64,000 nt of DNA, from sequence record ON287370.1. One strand, 5' to 3'. The notes below the pieces were generated by a model that searched no databases, was not told the DNA's origin, and saw only the letters and a program-made list of their open reading frames with translations. Each line of letters opens with the position of its first letter. Position 1 is the first letter of the stretch. A program made the position numbers and the translations under genes. Shown piece after piece: positions 3,581-60,072 of this stretch.

Positions 3581-3625
3581 TGCACATCCTCCTAAACTAA
3601 ATTCATTTATGTTCATACACTCTAA

Positions 3626-3645
3626 TAATATCTGTTTCAACATTT
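3626..3645 (-). promoter_or_regulatory. Early (virion RNAP) promoter
   Basis: Minus strand AAATGTTGAAACAGATATTA; resembles phiKZ early TATATTAC-type motif; same pattern at 8 other gene starts. Confidence 0.65.
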
Positions 3646-7713: not shown

Positions 7714-7780
7714 TTTGACTTCCTCTATATAAAGCTAATCAAAATATGAAAACAAAAAAAAATAAACAAGCAGATAATAA

Positions 7781-7808
7781 CAGGATCTCCCAATTACGGG
7801 AGATCCTG
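7781..7808 (-). terminator. Intrinsic terminator
   Basis: CAGGATCTCCC/GGGAGATCCTG stem followed by U-rich run on minus strand. Confidence 0.75.
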
Positions 7809-7816
7809 GTTATGAC

Positions 7817-7984
7817 TTATTTATTGCGAGTAGCCATTGGACGGTTAGATTCGCGATTATTGATGAACTGAATCACTGCCGCTTTGATACCATAATAAGC
7901 AGCTGTGCCAAATACCAGAGCACCAACACCGGAGAAGAATGCAGAACCGATTACTACTGAGTCATGTGGGCTGTTAAAGAACAT
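7817..7984 (-). CDS. Small single-pass membrane protein
   Basis: 55 aa from ATG 7984 (AGAGAG RBS), hydrophobic VVIGSAFFSGVGALVFGTAAYYGI; own promoter and terminator. Confidence 0.6.
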   Translation of the reverse strand: MFFNSPHDSVVIGSAFFSGVGALVFGTAAYYGIKAAVIQFINNRESNRPMATRNK

Positions 7985-8128: not shown

Positions 8129-8596
8129 TTAAATACCACAGTGTTCCCAAGTCTCATTGCACAGAGTAATTGTTTCAGGAAGTTTACCTTCCGCCAACAT
8201 CTTCTCTAATATAGGTGCAAGGATATCGGTATCTTTACCGTAGCATAATGATACGTGTAACAGAAGGTCGTCATAAGAATGTTGGAAACCTTCATCCAGT
8301 AGCTGCTTGAAGCGGTTTTGGATAGCTGGGGACTCCAGTACCAAAGCTGCCGCATACCACTTAGAACCAGGTTCTCCTAAAGTCTTTACGCCTTTAATCT
8401 TGGCCTTGTAAACCGACTTAGATTTAGAAGGGAAGATATCAGGATTCCGTTCATCGTACATTATTGTAGCATGGAGCTTGTTGGCAGGAATAAGATCTAA
8501 AGGTTGTTCAACCTCAGCAGAGTCGATGGCCTTTTGAATCTTAATCCCGGTGTTAAGGTCAACCTGTAATTCACAGTAACCAAAGTTAGACATCAT
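8129..8596 (-). CDS. acb1: Acb1-like (T4 57B family) 2H phosphoesterase, anti-CBASS nuclease
   Basis: Two HxT/S motifs: IPANKLHATIMY and YDDLLLHVSLCY align with T4 57B VPREKIHSTICY and FDDYTPHITLSY; LVLES and size 155 aa match. Confidence 0.85.
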   Translation of the reverse strand: MMSNFGYCELQVDLNTGIKIQKAIDSAEVEQPLDLIPANKLHATIMYDERNPDIFPSKSKSVYKAKIKGVKTLGEPGSKWYAAALVLESPAIQNRFKQLLDEGFQHSYDDLLLHVSLCYGKDTDILAPILEKMLAEGKLPETITLCNETWEHCGI

Positions 8597-9049
8597 TTAC
8601 TCCGCATCAGTGTTAGAAACACCACGAGCTATTCTGTCATCTACGCGAGCTTTAAGTGCAACCAAAGCACCACGTAAACATTCGATAGCTTTATCATTAT
8701 GGATGGACTGGAACTTACCTTTGTTCTGACCTTCTAAGCGATTCAGTGCAATTGCAATGAGTGCTTCGTTAGTCAAACCATTGGCACCAGTTTGTTCATC
8801 CACAAATCCACTTTGGAAGTTGATGCGCCCAACTTTATCGCCTTTAAGGTTATAGACTTTAAAGTTATTAAGATCATCAGACTTACGTTTGACAACAACT
8901 AGACCGTCTTTATGAATATCCACATTACCCTCTTTATCGGTAGCATGTTGAATGATAAAAGTCCGTTTCTGTTCTCTTGATAATCCTGGAGGACAAGTAA
9001 TGCGTTCAGACTTCAAACACTCATCCATACGTTCAGTATCAAAAATCAT
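8597..9049 (-). CDS. tad1: Tad1-family cyclic-nucleotide/gcADPR sponge
   Basis: C-terminal [51 protein letters not shown] matches Tad1 IKFQKG..GVIDSDLLEIVRDRL..GPFSSRENACAL..RVEDRIERNV. Confidence 0.75.
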
Positions 9050-9119
9050 ATTTTCTCACAAAAAAAAATAAGAACCTGAATAAAAGCAACAGGGTGTTTC
9101 CACCCCATTGCTATTTCAG

Positions 9120-9788
9120 TTATTCAGAACTTTCTTCTTCTAACTTACGACGACGTTCTTCTACTTCTTCCACGCTCAGAATGTTATCACCAATAATAGA
9201 AGTTGGGTCAAACAGGTTTGCTGCGATATGAAGGTTAGTAGCTTGCCAGGTGCGATGGATATCAACACGTTCGGAGAATGTCAGATGAGTCAGAGCATCG
9301 CGAGAAGATGTAAACACCGTTCTGTTTAGTGTATTCTCTTCAGCATCAAACATTACCTTACCATCGATGGATTTATTATAATAGAAGTTATCGCGACCCA
9401 CTCCAGTACACAGGTCACTAAAGTCCCCACCATAACCATCGACACGACCATCTTGATACAGATCCATCAAGAGTGGGTTGGCCATGATATAATCTCTCAT
9501 GAACCCAGTTGCTTGCCTTTGATATTGCGCCTCAGACAAATAACCGATTTCAAAGCGACCAACATACTGACCATCTTTACCATTAACTCGGTTAGAGAAT
9601 TCCCACATACGAGAATCCATAAAGTTCTTATGAGCTTCCTTTACCGTATTAAGGGTTTCACCTAACCATCCACTCAGATTCTGATATCGATCATAAAACC
9701 CATTCATGAACTTATCAAAAGCACCTGCACTTGCATCCGTCATCGACCCACTACATGCACGGGTAAATGCGCTAGTTGCATTTAGCAT
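9120..9788 (-). CDS. Conserved hypothetical protein downstream of nvRNAP beta'
   Basis: 222 aa, start overlaps upstream stop. Confidence 0.75.
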   Translation of the reverse strand: MLNATSAFTRACSGSMTDASAGAFDKFMNGFYDRYQNLSGWLGETLNTVKEAHKNFMDSRMWEFSNRVNGKDGQYVGRFEIGYLSEAQYQRQATGFMRDYIMANPLLMDLYQDGRVDGYGGDFSDLCTGVGRDNFYYNKSIDGKVMFDAEENTLNRTVFTSSRDALTHLTFSERVDIHRTWQATNLHIAANLFDPTSIIGDNILSVEEVEERRRKLEEESSE

Positions 9789-11377
9789 TAATCCTCCTCA
9801 ATAGGAACATCAAGAAACAGCGAATTAATATTCAGCAGGTTTGTCTTGGTGTGTGTTGCAAAACGACTGGTTCTAAATGGTTTATTTGGATCCAACATCT
9901 GATGGTGCCCCCAGCTGGAATATGCTTCAATCTTAGACATCATGTCAGGAATGAAGATCACATACATCTGATCGCCATCAAAGTCAGCACCGAATTCTTT
10001 TACAGTAGTAATTGGAATACGGATGGATTTATCATCAAGGTCACGGTTGAACTTAACGAAGAAACCACGTGCAGACAGATATTGGATTGACGGATTTCGA
10101 CCAGCGGTTACCATTGCATAACGGTTGGTTTCAATCCAGGTATAGAATTCTTCAATAATCGGAAGTTTGGCATGAGCAGCAGTTCGGATTATTTCCTTGA
10201 TCTTCTTCGGAGTATATCCCTTACGATATAGCCAGGAAGTCAGATGCTTGTCCAGACAGGTTAAACCATACATCCATGGTAGAATGATTGTATCAGAACG
10301 ACACACTCCAGATTCACCAGTGATAATAGATCGACCAGTAAATGGTAATTTACCAGCACCTGCGTGATATCGAATCATCCCCTTCTTACCGAACAGAATG
10401 TTCTTCTGTACTTCCGCCAGAGCATCCACCAGACCTTTCAGGTTACGCCCCATCAGATCTTCGTTTTCATCTACGCGGATATCATAGTCAGGATAGGTAT
10501 CGGCGATTGTGAAATAGATCTTATCCAGATCCGTTTGCTCTTTGTTTACATAACGGTCACGTTGGTCGGATTCAACGACTGTAGTGATTTTGTTTGGGAG
10601 TGGGAGATAGTTGAATACCGCCTTTGTACGATACTTATCCCAGAACTCAGAATAATAGTTGCGATCTTGTTCGGACAGATCGAGCACTTTGCTTACATCT
10701 GCTTCAATCGCACTACGGATGATCAGGTCGATGTTTTCGATGAAACTGTTATATCCATAAGGGATGTTCAGAGTTTCACGGAATGCTTCGATCTTACATG
10801 CGATTTTGAAAGCATTGTTATTTGGATCTTTGAAACGTTTCTCATTACGGACATCAGGGTTAACCCAATAGTCCACCAGGTTGACCTTTGGAGATTTGGT
10901 ATTCAGTTTACTGAAGAACACCGCATACATAGCTGGACTAATAAAGCCAGATACTTTTGCTGGACGTTTCAACCAGACCTTAGTCTCAATACGACTGGTT
11001 AGTGGTTTAACTACTTCATGACCACAGGACTCACAAACGAAACCAGAACCCAGATAAGAGTTACTACGATATTTCTTACAACTACAAGAAGCTACAGTGT
11101 CAAAGTTATTACCTTCGAACTCTGTACGAAGTAATTCAATAATCGCCTGACGGTCTTCTTCTATATTAAAGTCGAAGTCATTCAGATAGATTGGTGGGGT
11201 GATGGATTGGTCGTGCTTTTCATTGAAGTCAATGAAGTCTGGATAAATTGGGGTATAGAACGACTGGTCATCTTGCTGCGGTACTATCCCAGTTGCTTTG
11301 ATCATTGCATCAAACAACTTACTTGGGACCATATGTTCATCTGCAAATTTGTTAAGTATATCTGCCATACTTGACAT
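9788..11377 (-). CDS. Non-virion RNA polymerase beta' N-terminal subunit (phiKZ gp55-56.1-like)
   Basis: Zn ribbon CSC..CESC, GRNPSI, catalytic GADFDGD; directly downstream of chimallin. Confidence 0.92.
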   Translation of the reverse strand: MSSMADILNKFADEHMVPSKLFDAMIKATGIVPQQDDQSFYTPIYPDFIDFNEKHDQSITPPIYLNDFDFNIEEDRQAIIELLRTEFEGNNFDTVASCSCKKYRSNSYLGSGFVCESCGHEVVKPLTSRIETKVWLKRPAKVSGFISPAMYAVFFSKLNTKSPKVNLVDYWVNPDVRNEKRFKDPNNNAFKIACKIEAFRETLNIPYGYNSFIENIDLIIRSAIEADVSKVLDLSEQDRNYYSEFWDKYRTKAVFNYLPLPNKITTVVESDQRDRYVNKEQTDLDKIYFTIADTYPDYDIRVDENEDLMGRNLKGLVDALAEVQKNILFGKKGMIRYHAGAGKLPFTGRSIITGESGVCRSDTIILPWMYGLTCLDKHLTSWLYRKGYTPKKIKEIIRTAAHAKLPIIEEFYTWIETNRYAMVTAGRNPSIQYLSARGFFVKFNRDLDDKSIRIPITTVKEFGADFDGDQMYVIFIPDMMSKIEAYSSWGHHQMLDPNKPFRTSRFATHTKTNLLNINSLFLDVPIEED

Positions 11378-11475: not shown

Positions 11476-13392
11476 TTAGTAGTGGGTGTATGCGCCAGAG
11501 AAGCCACCCATTGCGCCTACCTGCATACCCTGCTGCAGAACTGCAGACATAGTGTAGTTCAGGTAATCGTTGCTGTGCTGTACCTGCCATGCGGATACGT
11601 TGTTGCTTGCAGACATGGTCATTGCACCAGCAGTTGCCATTGCGCGTGCTGCGGTGTTGAAGAACGCATCTTCCCATACGAAACGACGTTTCCAACCTTC
11701 GATGATTACGTTGGTATCGAACAGTTGATTCAGCAGGTTGTAGATAGCGTACTGACGAGCTTTTGGATCGGTACCGGTTGCGCCGTTGATCAGACCCAGG
11801 TATTGGTTAACAGCTGGTTCGTTTTGACCGTAGTAGTTTTCCTGACGCAGGAACATGCCGTCAACTTCTGCCAGGTCGAACCATTTGCCATCTTTACCAC
11901 GAGCGATACCAGCAGGCATCATGATCGGAGTAGGTTTCAGGATTGCATCACCTGCAGTCCAGTCTTTACGAGGATCACGGTTCTGACCTTTGGAAGCGTT
12001 TTCAGAGATGATGCGGCTGAAAGCTTTGTTAGACAGAACGTCCATCAGGTTGATCAGAGCTTTATGGTAAGTAGAACCATTAGGCTGACCGATGATGTTC
12101 CACCAGAAGTCGGAGTTAGAAACGTCTTCGGTGAAGGATGCCAGATCCAGAACGTATACTGCGTTCGGAGCAACGTAGCTGTTCAGCCACTGGTTTACCT
12201 GTGCAGCGTTGGTGATGTTCTTATCGGTGATCATCTGGCTGGTGCCGTAAGCCCCGCCCAACATCTGAGTCAGGTAGTTGTTGAAGTTACCCAGGTTACC
12301 GGAATGACCAACTTCTTTACCACGGAATGCTTCAGAGAAGAACTGCATCTGGTTTGCACCGATAGATGCGTACAGACCCAGCAGAGCAGTCAGCATGGAG
12401 TTGTTGTTGTTCAGGGTTTCGCCAGGGATAGTGATACCAGTAGAGATTACTGGAACCAGTGGACCTACGTTAACGCCTGGACGCAGCTGACGAGCCTGCA
12501 GGAACTGAGCCTGAGACATTGCTTCCAGAGACACTTTCAGGTAAGTGGTGCAGATAGAACGAGTGTTGTTGCTGTTCATGTTCTGCGTATTGTTTTTGTT
12601 GGTAGTGTGCAGTTTAACTGCCAGGTTGTATGGAACTGGTTTGCCGTCGATGGTCGCACGGTTTACAGGTTCGATACGAGCCACAGCTGCATCATCTTTA
12701 CCGAACAGTTTACCGTCTTTGAACGGAGTTGGGAACTGAACGCCTTGTTTGGTAACTTCCAGAACAACCAGGTTGTACAGAGCAGTGTTCCACTCTTTCA
12801 GCAGGTTGGTACGAACTTCTGGAACAACGTCTTCAGCTTTCACTGCGTTCTTGATGAAGGTTTCCAGGTTAACTACAGAAGGAGCGATGATGACAACGTT
12901 CTTCATCTGCTGGCCTTCGTGGAATGCAGAAGTAGATTTGATCTTCTCCATCAGTTCCTGGTTCATGAAGGACGCTGGTACTTTAGCGATACCGCGAGGC
13001 ATGTTTTCGTTAGCCAGCATGATCACTTCGGTAGCTTCAGTAACACCAGTTTTGTAGAACAGAACTGGCATGACGTAGCGGGTGCCGTCGATCACAGTGG
13101 AGATGGTCAGACCTGGCAGCTGAGAACTGATGTCAGAAGTAATAGACTGAACCAGAGTCGGCAGAGAGATTTTCTGAGACTGAGATGCAGTGTTCTTCTG
13201 CAGGTATTTGATGGTTTCTTCCAGAGATTTCTGGATGTCTTTTACTTCAGCGATAGAGTGAGTAGAAGAGAACAGGTTCGCTTCACCCAGCAGACCGAAC
13301 AGAGCATTTGAAGATTGCATAGTGTTTTTACCAGCGTTGTTGTTAGAAGAAGAGTTAGCGTTGTTTGCGTTCATGTTGTTATCGAGAGACAT
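11476..13392 (-). CDS. chmA: Chimallin, major phage-nucleus shell protein
   Basis: 638 aa, Asn-rich disordered N-terminus, strong high-expression codon bias (long antisense shadow ORF), immediately upstream of nvRNAP beta'-N and downstream of the DNA polymerase block. Confidence 0.85.
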   Translation of the reverse strand: MSLDNNMNANNANSSSNNNAGKNTMQSSNALFGLLGEANLFSSTHSIAEVKDIQKSLEETIKYLQKNTASQSQKISLPTLVQSITSDISSQLPGLTISTVIDGTRYVMPVLFYKTGVTEATEVIMLANENMPRGIAKVPASFMNQELMEKIKSTSAFHEGQQMKNVVIIAPSVVNLETFIKNAVKAEDVVPEVRTNLLKEWNTALYNLVVLEVTKQGVQFPTPFKDGKLFGKDDAAVARIEPVNRATIDGKPVPYNLAVKLHTTNKNNTQNMNSNNTRSICTTYLKVSLEAMSQAQFLQARQLRPGVNVGPLVPVISTGITIPGETLNNNNSMLTALLGLYASIGANQMQFFSEAFRGKEVGHSGNLGNFNNYLTQMLGGAYGTSQMITDKNITNAAQVNQWLNSYVAPNAVYVLDLASFTEDVSNSDFWWNIIGQPNGSTYHKALINLMDVLSNKAFSRIISENASKGQNRDPRKDWTAGDAILKPTPIMMPAGIARGKDGKWFDLAEVDGMFLRQENYYGQNEPAVNQYLGLINGATGTDPKARQYAIYNLLNQLFDTNVIIEGWKRRFVWEDAFFNTAARAMATAGAMTMSASNNVSAWQVQHSNDYLNYTMSAVLQQGMQVGAMGGFSGAYTHY

Positions 13393-13477
13393 TTGGAATT
13401 CCTTAATAAAGTGTTTATGGTTAACGTTAACGTTTGGTGAGGGATAATAGAAACATCTGTTTCCTTATACACTCTAA

Positions 13478-13499
13478 TAATATAGACTTCAAATATTTT
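13478..13499 (-). promoter_or_regulatory. Early promoter of chmA
   Basis: Minus strand AAAATATTTGAAGTCTATATTA. Confidence 0.7.
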
Positions 13500-22268: not shown

Positions 22269-22298
22269 AAATTCAAATCTCCACTTTATACATGGTGA

Positions 22299-22318
22299 TA
22301 ATATTTGTTTGAAATTTT
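22299..22318 (-). promoter_or_regulatory. Early promoter
   Basis: Minus strand AAAATTTCAAACAAATATTA. Confidence 0.55.
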
Positions 22319-22354
22319 ATACCCTTCCCAAAAAAAATAACATTGAAGTGTAAC

Positions 22355-28681: not shown

Positions 28682-28722
28682 TTTGAACTCCTTTAAAATT
28701 AATGTTATTACATTCACTTGAA

Positions 28723-28740
28723 TAATATCTATTCAAAAAC
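28723..28740 (-). promoter_or_regulatory. Early promoter
   Basis: Minus strand GTTTTTGAATAGATATTA. Confidence 0.55.
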
Positions 28741-37580: not shown

Positions 37581-37634
37581 AATAAGTTCCTCTATACTCT
37601 AATGAAAATTAATATCAATGTATATTCCCTTTGA

Positions 37635-37650
37635 TAATATCTATTTAATT
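37635..37650 (-). promoter_or_regulatory. Early promoter
   Basis: Minus strand AATTAAATAGATATTA. Confidence 0.5.
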
Positions 37651-37679
37651 AATAATGGAACTTATTTATATTATGTAAC

Positions 37680-38380
37680 AAAAAGTGAACTTCTTCCACT
37701 TCACTTCTTGTCGTTCAAGTTGCATTGCTCATACACATTTAACTGTGAATATTTACACAGGCCAGAGATATTATGTCACGATTAATATTTCTGATTCTTT
37801 AAGCGGTCTTGACCGGAATAAGTACTCTTAAAGAATCACGTACTGCCATCGTGCTTTCACTACGATTACCCCCGCCTGGGTTTTTGTAGCCATTGTTCAT
37901 GCCCTTAGCCAAAGGTGGGAAGTCTGCCCTTCCCCCTTTCTTTATAGCCTATTCAATTAGAAAGAGTAGATATAAAGAAGGGATCGTGCTCCGCGGCTTT
38001 GATATCTTCACAATAGGTAAGAAGGTGAGTGCATACTCCTTTTCCTGGTATGCATTTGCTTTCCCTAAGAGTATTAGAAATAGTATTCCTAGGGAAGGCA
38101 AGGAAGTCTTCAGTGAGGTTGGTAAGGGTCGAAAGACCCTACTTCCATATGTTTGTTTTCTGAAATATGGATATGGAAGTTATAGCTGCCTAAACTTCAA
38201 GCGTATGTGTTTAAGCTTATATTGAGCAGCCAGAGGAATGAATCTCTGGCACTTTTAATGTGATCTAACAAGTACACATTAAAAGCGTAACCGCCAGCTG
38301 GTTGCTGCTTACCTCAATGGTTAATGTGTTCCATTGAGGATTCCCTTGCCCCATATCCTAGTGTTTGATATGGGGCCTTT
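37680..38380. repeat. Non-coding array of about 12 hairpins at the strand switch
   Basis: GATTCTTTAAG/CTTAAAGAATC, CTTTTAATGTG/CACATTAAAAG, CCTCAATGG/CCATTGAGG, CCCCATATC/GATATGGGG, CTTCCATAT/ATATGGAAG, AGGGTC-GAAA-GACCCT. Confidence 0.65.
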
Positions 38381-38399
38381 TTCTCCCTAAGGAATTGTC

Positions 38400-39653: not shown

Positions 39654-39729
39654 GCTCATGTAGTTCAGTCGGTGGAACGGCGGACTGTTAATCCGTATGT
39701 CACAGGTTCGAGCCCTGTCATGAGCGCCA
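39654..39729 (+). tRNA. tRNA-Asn(GTT)
   Basis: GCTCATG/CATGAGC acceptor, GCGGA-CTGTTAA-TCCGT anticodon arm, TTCGAGC T loop, encoded CCA. Confidence 0.95.
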
Positions 39730-39734
39730 ATCAA

Positions 39735-39831
39735 TGCCCTATAGTGATGAGGGAATGGTGGATTATCAAATCTCCAGATTCTATTATCCATAAACCATTG
39801 TTGTGAAACGAATCATCACACAAGGGCACCA
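39735..39831 (+). ncRNA. CCA-terminated non-cloverleaf RNA between tRNAs
   Basis: GCCCT/AGGGC + A + CCA, GTGATGA/TCATCAC, AATGGT/ACCATT; no canonical D or T arm. Confidence 0.5.
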
Positions 39832-39836
39832 TATGA

Positions 39837-39925
39837 AGAGAGTTGGATGAGTTGGTTTAAGTCGCCTCCCTGCTAAGGAGGTTGTCCTTCGGGGCACAAG
39901 GGTTCGAATCCCTTACTCTCTGCCA
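39837..39925 (+). tRNA. tRNA-Ser(GCT)
   Basis: AGAGAGT/ACTCTCT acceptor, CCTCC-CTGCTAA-GGAGG, long variable arm, G73, CCA. Confidence 0.93.
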
Positions 39926-39929
39926 TTTC

Positions 39930-40006
39930 CCGCTCTTAGCTCAGCAGGATAGAGCAATTGCCTTCTAAGCAATCGGTCACTGGTTCGAATCCAGTAGAGT
40001 GGACCA
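39930..40006 (+). tRNA. tRNA-Arg(TCT)
   Basis: CCGCTCT/AGAGTGG acceptor, ATTGC-CTTCTAA-GCAAT, TTCGAAT, CCA. Confidence 0.95.
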
Positions 40007-40023
40007 CTTATTAAGGAGTTACT

Positions 40024-40152
40024 ATGTATTTTAGTGGTGGCTCCTGGACAGGGGCTTTTGTAATCTTTGGATTACTTTGCGCTGTAGTTGGTTGGGGCGT
40101 TATTGAAACACTACGTTGGCTTTTCTCTTTCGTCCATATTACATTTGGTTAG
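40024..40152 (+). CDS. Small membrane protein (42 aa), not in ORF track
   Basis: AAGGAG RBS; MYFSGGSWTGAFVIFGLLCAVVGWGVIETLRWLFSFVHITFG*. Confidence 0.65.
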   Translation: MYFSGGSWTGAFVIFGLLCAVVGWGVIETLRWLFSFVHITFG

Positions 40153-40162
40153 GAATATTTAA

Positions 40163-40429
40163 ATGAAAGTTGTAATTTATGGCAAACCGAATTGCCCATG
40201 GTGTGATCGCGCCAAGAACCTGGTTAAAGATGTTGAAGGTATTGAACATGAATACATCGACATTACTCAAGTTGGGATCGATGGCCCTAAGCTTAGTGAA
40301 ATCTGCGGTGAAGAAGTTCGCACAGTTCCACAGATCCTGGTTGACGGTAAATACAATCCACATGGCTTCCAAGGTCTGATACCAGTTGTTGCTAAACACA
40401 AAGCAAGTCTTCCTCAAAAAGAAGCTTGA
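40163..40429 (+). CDS. Glutaredoxin
   Basis: YGKPNCPWC redox motif, TVPQI, 88 aa. Confidence 0.9.
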   Translation: MKVVIYGKPNCPWCDRAKNLVKDVEGIEHEYIDITQVGIDGPKLSEICGEEVRTVPQILVDGKYNPHGFQGLIPVVAKHKASLPQKEA

Positions 40430-40435
40430 TAGTGC

Positions 40436-40512
40436 GGCCCTGTAGCTCAGTTGGTTAGAGCAAGTGACTCATAATCGCCTGGTCACAGGTTCAAGTCCTG
40501 TCAGGGCCACCA
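40436..40512 (+). tRNA. tRNA-Ile2(CAT) (lysidine type)
   Basis: GGCCCTG/CAGGGCC A73 CCA; GACTCATAATCGC and overall sequence close to enterobacterial tRNA-Ile2, not fMet. Confidence 0.88.
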
Positions 40513-40520
40513 TGTAGTAA

Positions 40521-40898
40521 CCCAGTTAAGTTGGGAAGTGTAAGTCTGGTCCAATGAGCCGATTGATTCGGGGTTGGAAGGGGTTTGCCAGTCAACGGTA
40601 TTGGGATGTAAGACCTCTGTAAGTTCGGCCCTACTGGGCAGACAAGTACAGAGGCAATACCTGGCTAGTATGCCAGGTTTAAATCCAAGAGTGAACGGCG
40701 GCGAGAGTCCGCTATTGTAAATAGCTCTTGGTGGGTGTTGTCCTGGTTAAGCCTCGGCGACATAGCAGCGCGTTTGATAGAATGCCCAGTAGCATAAGCT
40801 GAATGCACTTCCGATACGTGACTATTGGATTATCGATGATGGTAGAACCCGAACTCCATCCTGGGCGGTCATAAAAAACAATATCTATCTTAACTGGG
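40521..40898 (+). ncRNA. Candidate 378-nt pseudoknotted ncRNA
   Basis: CCCAGTTAAG/CTTAACTGGG perfect closing helix, GGAAGTGTA/TGCACTTCC, loop-derived CTACTGGGCA/TGCCCAGTAG 10-bp pseudoknot, several hairpins. Confidence 0.65.
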
Positions 40899-40982
40899 AA
40901 CGCTGTACCCATATGTGTCTTGGTATCGAACAAACCCTAGCTATATATGCATAAATGTGATGAGCTTGAGAGTTGATGATAC

Positions 40983-41112
40983 GGAGACACACCCATCGGT
41001 CCTTCTGAACGAAAGCATAACTTAAGGTTGAACATTGATGTTCAAATAACCTGGGAGAGTAATGAGATTACTCATGCGATATCAGAGGACCACCCTAATC
41101 CCTTTGGTGAGG
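40983..41112 (+). ncRNA. Multi-stem RNA domain 5' of the hammerhead
   Basis: GGTCC-TCTGA/TCAGA-GGACC, TTGAACA/TGTTCAA, GAGTAAT/ATTACTC, ACCCT/AGGGT. Confidence 0.55.
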
Positions 41113-41114
41113 GT

Positions 41115-41210
41115 TGTCGTACTATCTGACGAGTCTGACGACATAAAACAAGTAGACGAAACGGGTATCCAATAAGGTGTCTCCAGCACCATTGGAACCG
41201 TCATAGAACA
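41115..41210 (+). ncRNA. Type I hammerhead ribozyme, predicted cleavage GUC after 41202
   Basis: CUGACGA 41126-32; stem II GUCU/AGAC; GAAA 41158-61; stem III ACGG/CCGU extended by UCCAAU/AUUGGA and GGUG/CACC; stem I CUAU/AUAG; loop II pseudoknot UGUCGU/ACGACA. Confidence 0.9.
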
Positions 41211-41452
41211 GCTGTGCCCTAACCGTGAGCAGCCACCCGATGTTCAAGGGTGAGACAACAGCGCTTTAACTGGAAGGTAACTATATGGCATTATAGCGTA
41301 CCAAGCCAGACGCAAACGGTCCGTCTCCATGCCAGGGGAAAGTTGTTGACATCAACCGTAGACAGCCGTCTGAGTGATTGTAATATGAAGGGATTTGCAA
41401 CCCTGAGATTATTGATTGCTCTTTCGAGTGTCCATGTAACTAAGCATTTACT

Positions 41453-41482
41453 CCCTACCCCTTCCGAAAGGTTGGGGTAGGG
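41453..41482 (+). terminator. Terminator closing the ncRNA locus
   Basis: CCCTACCCC/GGGGTAGGG stem followed by U-rich tract. Confidence 0.8.
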
Positions 41483-41612
41483 GTTTATGTTTGTCTTTTA
41501 GTTTTAAATCATATGACGTCTTCTCTCTATTAACAAACCTAGGATGGTTGGATAGTGAGATCATTGCCTTTCTATAAAGGTCTATTTCGAAATAGTATTT
41601 AGGAGGGTTCAA

Positions 41613-57367: not shown

Positions 57368-57412
57368 ATTGATCTCTCTATATTTAATTAAAACTATTCG
57401 TATTCATGCTAA

Positions 57413-57434
57413 TAATATCTGTTTGAATAATTTT
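57413..57434 (-). promoter_or_regulatory. Early promoter
   Basis: Minus strand AAAATTATTCAAACAGATATTA. Confidence 0.65.
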
Positions 57435-60003: not shown

Positions 60004-60046
60004 ATCTAAACTCCTAATTAAATTGTTGTAGGTCTATACACTTAGA

Positions 60047-60072
60047 TAATATAGACCTGATTTCAAATACAA
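60047..60072 (-). promoter_or_regulatory. Early promoter
   Basis: Minus strand TTGTATTTGAAATCAGGTCTATATTA, near copy of the 8040 promoter. Confidence 0.7.

Follow-up and report, generated by a model that had tools for sequence, protein, structure and literature searches.

Two adjacent genes on the minus strand of the Serratia phage vB_SmaM-Sureiya, one encoding a Tad1-family protein and the other an Acb1-family 2H phosphodiesterase, are probably co-transcribed as an anti-signalling cassette of this nucleus-forming jumbo phage. The window analysed here comprises 64,000 nucleotides and corresponds to positions 1-64000 of ON287370.1 (100% identity). Sureiya is a chimallin-encoding jumbo phage of 256 kb with S. 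marcescens LVF3 as host, and its isolation paper appeared without functional annotation. The initial annotation of the window placed the pair two genes downstream of chmA, in an otherwise conserved chimallivirus block, and both the coordinates (Table 1) and a comparison with related phages agree with this; the two intervening genes encode a piece of the RNA polymerase beta' subunit and a homologue of phiKZ gp59.

The Tad1-like protein is proposed to be a cytoplasmic sponge, whose dimer pocket would hold glycocyclic ADP-ribose (gcADPR) and cyclic dinucleotides. The Acb1-like protein, a putative metal-independent 2H phosphodiesterase with an intact HxT/HxS tetrad, belongs to a family whose enzymes linearise adenosine-containing 3'-5' cyclic di- and trinucleotides. 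Together, the two proteins would blunt Thoeris, CBASS (cyclic-oligonucleotide-based anti-phage signalling systems) and possibly effectors dependent on cyclic tri-adenylate (cA3), such as NucC, all of which kill the cell from the cytoplasm, a compartment that the phage nucleus does not protect. The overall interpretation of the initial annotation is supported, and we infer the sequester-and-destroy activity against Thoeris and CBASS, with its ligands, enzymatic activity, expression timing and protection.

The downstream gene (8129-8596) encodes an Acb1-family 2H phosphodiesterase, as had been claimed from the letters alone. The Pfam Acb1 model (PF23474) matches its product at 51.1 bits (cut-off 27; E 1.5e-13), and no other Pfam family does. 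All 35 homologues keep H42-x-T44 and H114-x-S116, which in the alignment fall on the catalytic motifs of FBB1 Acb1; the second one carries Ser in place of Thr. In the AlphaFold2 (AF2) model, with a predicted local distance difference test (pLDDT) score of 94.2, both motifs are located in central strands (E42-47 and E114-119). Foldseek ranks 1-5 are occupied by 9Q2Y/9Q2G and 7T26/7T27, with E 1.3e-8 to 7e-6 and template modelling (TM) scores of 0.67-0.78; the best match is the Acb1-type phosphodiesterase of Burkholderia phage BCSR5 (TM 0.77/0.74, E 1.3e-8), followed by FBB1 Acb1 (TM 0.67/0.75, E 8e-7), and the matches in BFVD are mostly named Acb1. Among the 35 homologues Y7, E148 and W150 are invariant and W80 is nearly so. 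These four residues are plausible counterparts of the base-stacking aromatics, the adenine-reading Glu and the C-terminal lid residues of FBB1 (Y12, W74, F107, W147, E141), at the level of the set rather than of single residues, as the sequence alignment to 7T26 ends before the C-terminus. With T4 gp57B, FBB1 Acb1 (7T26/7T27) and BCSR5 (9Q2G/9Q2Y) the protein shares the 2H fold, two His-x-Thr/Ser motifs and a length of about 150 aa, although its identity to the solved Acb1 structures is only 16-18% and its second motif is HxS, not HxT. Acb1 itself, with a 2H fold and an HxT/HxT tetrad, cleaves 3'3'-cyclic GMP-AMP (cGAMP), cUA, cAAA and cAAG, but not 3'2'-cGAMP, c-di-UMP or cA4 (Hobbs et al., PMC9117128).

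It is very unlikely that this gene encodes a general 2H RNA-end or 2',3'-cyclic phosphodiesterase of the LigT type, serving RNA repair or metabolism and not immune evasion. The family is labelled "RNA ligase" in PHROGs (PHROG 755), several GenBank records read "RNA ligase" or "RNA 2',3'-cyclic phosphodiesterase", and HxT/S motifs are common to all 2H enzymes. However, the sole Pfam match is the Acb1 model, above its cut-off, a Tad1 gene constantly accompanies the gene, and Foldseek puts Acb1-type structures first (E 1e-8 to 7e-6, TM 0.62-0.78), with the generic 2H enzymes LigT, plant CPDase and Usb1 at E >= 6.6e-4 and TM 0.4-0.58. Several Acb1 homologues carry the annotation "structural protein", namely pETSU_006 (L015:4001-4462) and those of phages CBB, XbC2 and pEa_SNUABM_47.

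The upstream gene (8597-9049) encodes a Tad1-family protein, and sequence, profile and Foldseek comparisons all bear out that assignment. Pfam and NCBIfam scans of the single protein gave no match, nor did the Pfam Acb2/Tad1 hairpin model at E up to 0.1, so that the homology had to be established with phmmer against PDB sequences and with profiles. Single-sequence phmmer recovered CbTad1 and CmTad1 at E ~6e-6 over residues 59-148, and BLASTP aligned the founding member, SBSphiJ7 Tad1, with 42% identity over 76 aa (E 4e-14). A profile of 17 clade sequences matched CmTad1 (E 4e-21), CbTad1 (E 6e-16) and phiKZ gp184 (E 2.6e-13), and a whole-library search with the Tad1 profile returned 5452 cluster representatives at E <= 0.001. 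The AF2 model, built on an alignment of 66 diverse relatives (pLDDT 87.8), has four strands and two long helices; its best 20 Foldseek matches in the PDB are exclusively Tad1 (E 1e-7 to 3e-5, target-normalised TM 0.68-0.75), and the first non-Tad1 match has an E of 0.09. A Foldseek comparison with Tad1 and Acb1 structures had been proposed as a check in the initial annotation; both proteins were matched, and the absence of a structural match, named there as a refuting outcome, did not occur. With SBSphiJ7 Tad1, CbTad1 (7UAV/7UAW/8SMD) and CmTad1 (8KBB-D) the protein shares the fold of strands and a two-helix hairpin, significant similarity over the C-terminal ~80 residues, and the Asn/Arg/Arg pocket residues for gcADPR and cyclic dinucleotides. 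It differs from these known Tad1 proteins in lacking the trinucleotide-binding Arg and Thr, in carrying Gln at the F82-equivalent, in not keeping the hexamer-interface residues, in an extra 41-aa N-terminal module, and in being encoded beside Acb1 in a virulent jumbo phage.

The N-terminal residues 1-41 constitute a separate, poorly conserved module, which matches a 48-aa PHROG (phrog_17259) and is found as a stand-alone unannotated small open reading frame (ORF) in Kosakonia phage Kc263 (L006:5956-6144). In Shewanella phage SXP01 the module is fused, in N1M2 and OBP another segment takes its place, and Tad1-like forms of 107-113 aa lack it. The OBP protein (OBP_060; L004:5968-6393) is annotated as 108 aa but is probably 141 aa long. 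A Tad1 domain in a nucleus-forming phage is also found in phiKZ gp184, a minor capsid protein (PDB 8Y6V) and published Tad1 that is packaged within the capsid and, according to reports, injected. As gp184 carries this domain at its C-terminus and the Sureiya protein has an extra N-terminal module, the latter might likewise be packaged and injected, with its first 41 residues as a capsid-targeting or propeptide segment. We regard this as unlikely: the similarity to gp184 is limited to the Tad1 core, the module has only ~41 aa, close relatives have exchanged it or lack it, Kc263 encodes it as a small ORF of its own, and in OBP and N1M2 the neighbouring genes are annotated as "virion structural", but the Tad1-like and Acb1 genes are not. 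Moreover, gp184 has 230 aa, a large N-terminal capsid-bound part and another genomic locus, whereas the Sureiya protein is short, encoded in the chmA block and paired with Acb1.

The ligand site was examined with residue roles taken from Li et al. (bioRxiv 10.1101/2023.11.15.567273) and mapped by HMMER alignments. N92, R109 and R113 of CbTad1, whose mutation abolishes binding of gcADPR and 2'3'-cGAMP (Li et al., bioRxiv 10.1101/2023.11.15.567273), correspond to N118, R135 and R139 of the Tad1-like protein and are invariant in 66 of 66 diverse family members. The CbTad1 F82-equivalent is Q108, with Gln in 14 of 14 clade members and Phe in 40 of the 52 others. The trinucleotide contacts R90/T97 of CbTad1 (R88/T95 of CmTad1) correspond to I116/E123: at the first position Arg is present in none of the 14 clade members and in 30 of the 52 other Tad1s, and at the second Thr is present in one of the 14 and in 29 of the 52, so that these residues are not universal in the family. 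The CmTad1 interface residues Q98/E99/M102/W103/K106 are represented by R126/G127/V130/A131/A134; these hexamer-interface residues are not kept, and the oligomeric state and ligand may therefore differ. Since the three pocket residues are kept and the trinucleotide residues are replaced, the protein is predicted to be a sponge with an intact dimer pocket and without a canonical trinucleotide site. Of the ligand range first given for the family, gcADPR and cyclic oligonucleotides, the part that relies on the Asn/Arg/Arg pocket may apply here, but both trinucleotide residues and one aromatic pocket residue are absent, and the full ligand range of the Tad1 family should not be assumed for this lineage.

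These replacements leave room for a possible, though doubtful, variant in which the sponge has drifted from canonical gcADPR towards signals that Acb1 cannot cut (3'2'-cGAMP, c-di-GMP), or towards other ADPR-derived Thoeris signals such as histidine-ADP-ribose (His-ADPR) or N7-cyclic ADP-ribose (N7-cADPR). In that case the signals covered by the two proteins would complement each other without overlap. Besides Q108 and the replaced trinucleotide-binding Arg and Thr, this would fit the properties of the families, as Acb1 does not cleave 3'2'-cGAMP or cGG, signals of a kind that Tad1 and Tad2 bind (Li et al., bioRxiv 10.1101/2023.11.15.567273), and as sponge families are reported to shift specificity readily. 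It would also fit the comparison of the near-identical phages Sureiya (8597-9049) and Yubaba (L020:6598-7053), whose Tad1-like proteins differ by V65A, a one-codon insertion after K69, G74A and S80N, all in the strand/loop region (residues 65-80), and whose Acb1 and chmA proteins are identical. The three polar pocket residues common to gcADPR-binding Tad1s are nevertheless invariant.

Linkage of the two genes is tight. On the minus strand the junction reads gcGGAG-TAA-ATG-ATG-tct (TAAATGATG, exact), with GGAG located 6 nt 5' of the second ATG, within the last codons of the Tad1-like ORF. This second ATG (8593) is the start in GenBank (SUREIYA_00090, 154 aa) and probably the real one, because homologues begin with MSN. 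Stop and start are 1-10 nt apart in seven other phages or contigs, and in some of them the gap has its own Shine-Dalgarno sequence (GGAG); the ORFs of Aeromonas phage ZPAH34 share one base. This arrangement gives good support to co-transcription. The genes had been described as translationally coupled across a direct stop-start junction; the junction is exact, but with gaps of 1-10 nt in the relatives coupling itself is only plausible.

Table 1. Features of the Tad1-Acb1 locus in the 64,000-nt window, and cargo of the corresponding slot in other chimalliviruses (positions with a locus number refer to the compared loci).
Feature	Position	Strand	Evidence or remark
Early-promoter-like motif ATATTATTAGAGTGTAT, upstream of chmA	13467-13483	minus	nearest such motif upstream of the pair
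ATATTATYNNNNKGWAT sites upstream of operons	3615-3631, 13467-13483, 22288-22304, 28712-28728, 37624-37640, 57402-57418, 60036-60052	minus	
chmA (chimallin, nuclear shell protein)	11476-13392	minus	phrog_4795 "nuclear shell protein" (E 8.6e-125); tblastn to annotated nuclear shell proteins
Phage multisubunit RNA polymerase beta' piece	9788-11377	minus	phrog_2987 (E 5e-146); Pfam RNA_pol_Rpb1_2 (28.4 bits)
phiKZ gp59 homologue (phrog_3254), conserved left border of the variable slot	9120-9788	minus	tblastn matches in 164 phage records including PHIKZ059
Conserved intrinsic-terminator-like hairpin, directly 3' of the gp59-like stop codon	9085-9112	minus	fold z-score; covariation in 10 phages
T-run motif TTATTTTTTTTTG, 9 nt 5' of the Tad1-like ATG	9059-9071	minus	conserved in 8-10 phages
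Tad1-like ORF, 150 aa (SUREIYA_00100)	8597-9049	minus	ORF and GenBank
N-terminal module, residues 1-41, two predicted helices, lineage-variable	8927-9049	minus	phrog_17259 on residues 3-30; pLDDT 69-84
Tad1-family core, residues 42-150 and stop; four strands, two-helix hairpin; N118, R135, R139, R142	8597-8926	minus	
Acb1-family 2H phosphodiesterase ORF, 155 aa; H42-x-T44, H114-x-S116	8129-8596	minus	
55-aa single-pass membrane protein, conserved right border of the slot	7817-7984	minus	counterparts in OBP, N1M2, AH04, Survivor ("membrane protein"), pEt-SU and metagenomic contigs
Next terminator-like hairpin (12 bp, 7 GC pairs), closes the Tad1-Acb1-small-gene unit	7781-7808	minus	
gp59-to-gp62-like slot, phiKZ gp60/gp61	L007:5574-6360		
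Slot, RisingSun gp31-33	L011:5701-6606		
Slot, Aphrodite1 gp069-070	L010:5686-6364		
Slot, Miami 285-288, including a transposase	L009:5685-7860		
Slot, EL	L008:5643-5741		empty

The terminator noted ahead of the pair at about 9087-9110 is confirmed as a conserved hairpin. The hairpin (9112-9085) consists of a 12-bp stem with a GAAA loop, followed by TTTATT (-30.1 kcal/mol, z = -6.55). A hairpin after the gp59-like stop recurs in ten phages whose sequences differ, and 9 of the 12 pairs are supported by compensatory changes; 87% of cells are paired, compared to 35-52% with the partners slid, and the observed value was reached in none of 500 shuffles. De novo search of the intergenic regions identified ATATTATYNNNNKGWAT (10 sites vs 1.4 expected; 0/100 shuffles reach 10), which fits the AT-rich early-promoter class described for jumbo phages and is probably the early (virion RNA polymerase) promoter class of Sureiya. 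Minus-strand ATATTATYNNNNKGWAT sites are absent between chmA and the pair, in agreement with the earlier remark that no early promoter motif was seen there. A sigma-70 scan showed no enrichment (13 sites vs 14.8 expected), and Rfam returned only a sub-threshold small RNA match, on the other terminator. The phiKZ early-promoter motif, TATATTAC, was rejected as a Sureiya early promoter, with 1 site in the window vs 2.7 expected.

The 70-nt spacer ahead of the Tad1-like gene contains, next to the conserved hairpin, the T-run TTATTTTTTTTTG, the best-conserved element of the spacer across relatives. In the window TTATTTTTTTTTG has 5 sites vs 0.44 expected, all on the minus strand. Exact copies lie at 9059-9071 and 7753-7765, each 13-15 nt 3' of a terminator-like hairpin, and weaker copies at 22328, 33283 and 55727. 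It is a candidate for a second terminator element or a promoter element. In the predicted fold the T-run can pair with GAGAAAAUA just 5' of the Tad1-like AUG. No terminator was seen between the Acb1-like gene and the 55-aa membrane-protein gene, the next one being at 7808-7781. Transcription of the pair could start at the chmA promoter, with attenuated read-through, or at a middle or late promoter close to the T-run that escaped recognition; according to a review, middle and late jumbo-phage promoters are not predictable bioinformatically.

Distribution of the pair was surveyed by tblastn in 50,697 phage records. A Tad1-like gene immediately followed by Acb1 was found in about 18 isolates: Sureiya, Yubaba, Klebsiella phage N1M2, Shewanella phage SXP01, Pseudomonas phage OBP and about a dozen Aeromonas jumbo phages, one of them ZPAH34 (hhalign 99.6%). 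Serratia phage PCH45 did not come up in these searches. Metagenomic contigs carry chimallin, RNA polymerase, gp59-like, Tad1-like and Acb1 genes in that order. In Erwinia phage AH04 and Kosakonia phage Kc263 the slot is occupied by one protein of 241-245 aa, of which the N-terminal ~90 residues are Tad1-derived (hhalign 98.7%, E 2.4e-16). In the Tad1-derived domain a loop and the C-terminal lid have been lost, as have both pocket arginines (R135 to G, R139 to K), and the fusion point is the original Met-Ser of Acb1. Acb1 alone is present in the slot of Pantoea phage Survivor and Edwardsiella phage pEt-SU. Since the Tad1 part is lost or degraded in these sister phages and Acb1 is kept, the two are not obligate partners, and the sponge is dispensable in some hosts.

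The AH04 and Kc263 fusions, which join Acb1 to a Tad1-derived domain without pocket arginines and C-terminal lid, might suggest that the Sureiya Tad1-like protein is no longer a sponge, but an oligomerising or substrate-presenting partner of Acb1. This seems highly unlikely, as the Sureiya protein keeps every family-invariant residue, its helices are strongly constrained, and the fused state is derived on the tree described below.

In more distant chimalliviruses the slot contains unrelated ORFans (phiKZ, RisingSun, Aphrodite1, Miami), and in phage EL it is empty. As each lineage carries different small ORFans, the slot is a candidate accessory or counter-defence hotspot. phiKZ gp60 and gp61 have the same sizes as the Sureiya pair but are unrelated to it (hhalign 0.2% for gp60 vs the Tad1 profile, 0.4% for gp61 vs the Acb1 profile), and PDB searches with them were uninformative. 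RisingSun gp32, Aphrodite1 gp069 and Miami 286 do not resemble Acb1 and match no Pfam family. RisingSun A0A223LHU1 (144 aa) and Miami A0A873WM59 (129 aa), named Acb1 in BFVD, structurally match the Acb1-like model; because the slot cargo of these two phages is not Acb1-like, their Acb1-named genes must be located elsewhere in the genome. Additional genes next to the pair were observed in two Aeromonas phages: a 158-aa ORFan 3' of Acb1 in ZPAH34 (L022:3550-4026) and a 347-aa HNH endonuclease gene directly 5' of the Tad1-like gene in PS1 (L005:5020-6063). The gene-neighbourhood survey suggested in the initial annotation showed a pair that is tightly linked within one clade, in a slot that varies across chimalliviruses.

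A tree of concatenated flanking proteins (gp59-like and SbcD-like) groups all phages with Acb1 in the slot in one clade (100/99), with the pair-bearing Aeromonas phage PS1 basal and with the fused group (81/87) and the Acb1-only group (100/99) nested inside it. Given this topology, the pair is most simply ancestral to the clade, with fusion and loss derived. The description of the pair as "inserted" in the chimallin block consequently applies to a variable slot within a conserved block, but not to a recent or Sureiya-specific insertion, and the cassette appears to have been inherited vertically in the OBP / Petsuvirus / Aeromonas chimallivirus clade, at a slot that is hypervariable in the family as a whole. 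Composition gave no signal of recent transfer, with a GC content of 0.40-0.42 in the pair vs 0.38-0.43 in the flanks. Between Sureiya and N1M2 the ratio of non-synonymous to synonymous substitution rates (dN/dS) is 0.02-0.11 for eight flanking genes, 0.12 for Acb1 and 0.44 for the Tad1-like gene, the last value being inflated because the N-terminal module is swapped and the strand region variable; the Tad1-like helices are near-identical between the two phages.

Several of these observations weigh against reading the pair as an anti-signalling cassette: the Gln at the F82-equivalent; the hexamer-interface residues that are not kept, so that oligomeric state and ligand may differ; the "RNA ligase" label of the Acb1-like family; the conserved terminator ahead of the pair with no promoter found in front of it; and the sister phages that keep Acb1 alone or with a pocket-less Tad1 remnant. 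The cassette reading is still considered the probable one. A tentative extension of it, about as doubtful as the drifted sponge, is an evolved division of labour, in which the sponge would have shed its trinucleotide site after pairing and specialised on signals that Acb1 cannot cut, the sponge fold would have been recycled in AH04 and Kc263 as a pocket-less N-terminal domain of Acb1, and the gp59-to-gp62 slot would be a family-wide anti-defence hotspot.

Downstream of the 55-aa gene, the minus strand continues with a 135-aa "virion structural" homologue, a 278-aa protein and an SbcD-like nuclease. Elsewhere in the window, chmA (11476-13392) has a GC content of 0.48-0.50, compared to ~0.40 in neighbouring genes. 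Two long stretches are without annotated gene (37581-38399, 819 nt; 40513-41612, ~1100 nt), located at a strand switch and beside a transfer RNA cluster (39654-40512).

Anti-Thoeris and anti-CBASS genes have already been reported in chimallin-encoding and other jumbo phages by AntiDefenseFinder-based surveys, and a 2026 review states that, apart from the phiKZ Tad1, no anti-defence protein of jumbo phages has yet been described. Fusions of two sponges have been published (Tad2-Acb4 and Sequestin fusions; bioRxiv 10.1101/2025.07.12.664507); with these and with anti-defence islands (AntiDefenseFinder, PMC11724313) the Sureiya pair shares the presence of two anti-signalling functions in one locus or polypeptide. 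The published fusions, however, join sponge to sponge, whereas the pair described here combines a sponge with a nuclease, and its relatives fuse a pocket-less sponge remnant to the nuclease. A literature search found no paper describing a Tad1-Acb1 cassette or fusion; both proteins belong to known families as new members, and that search yielded no description of their conserved arrangement.

The phage nucleus shields DNA from nucleases but cannot stop abortive infection via small diffusible signals. The locus points to a second, enzymatic route (Acb1) against such signals in a chimallivirus clade infecting Serratia, Klebsiella, Pseudomonas, Shewanella and Aeromonas. In the genus of the Sureiya host, a cA3/NucC pathway is reported to stop another nucleus-forming phage; Acb1 accepts cA3 as a substrate (Hobbs et al., PMC9117128). 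The natural variants (pair, fusion and Acb1 alone) offer a way to test whether sponge and nuclease are redundant or complementary. The variable slot is also a concrete place to seek new counter-defence genes; if it is indeed a family-wide hotspot, phiKZ gp60/gp61, RisingSun gp31-33, Aphrodite1 gp069 and Miami 285-286 would be undiscovered counter-defence proteins.

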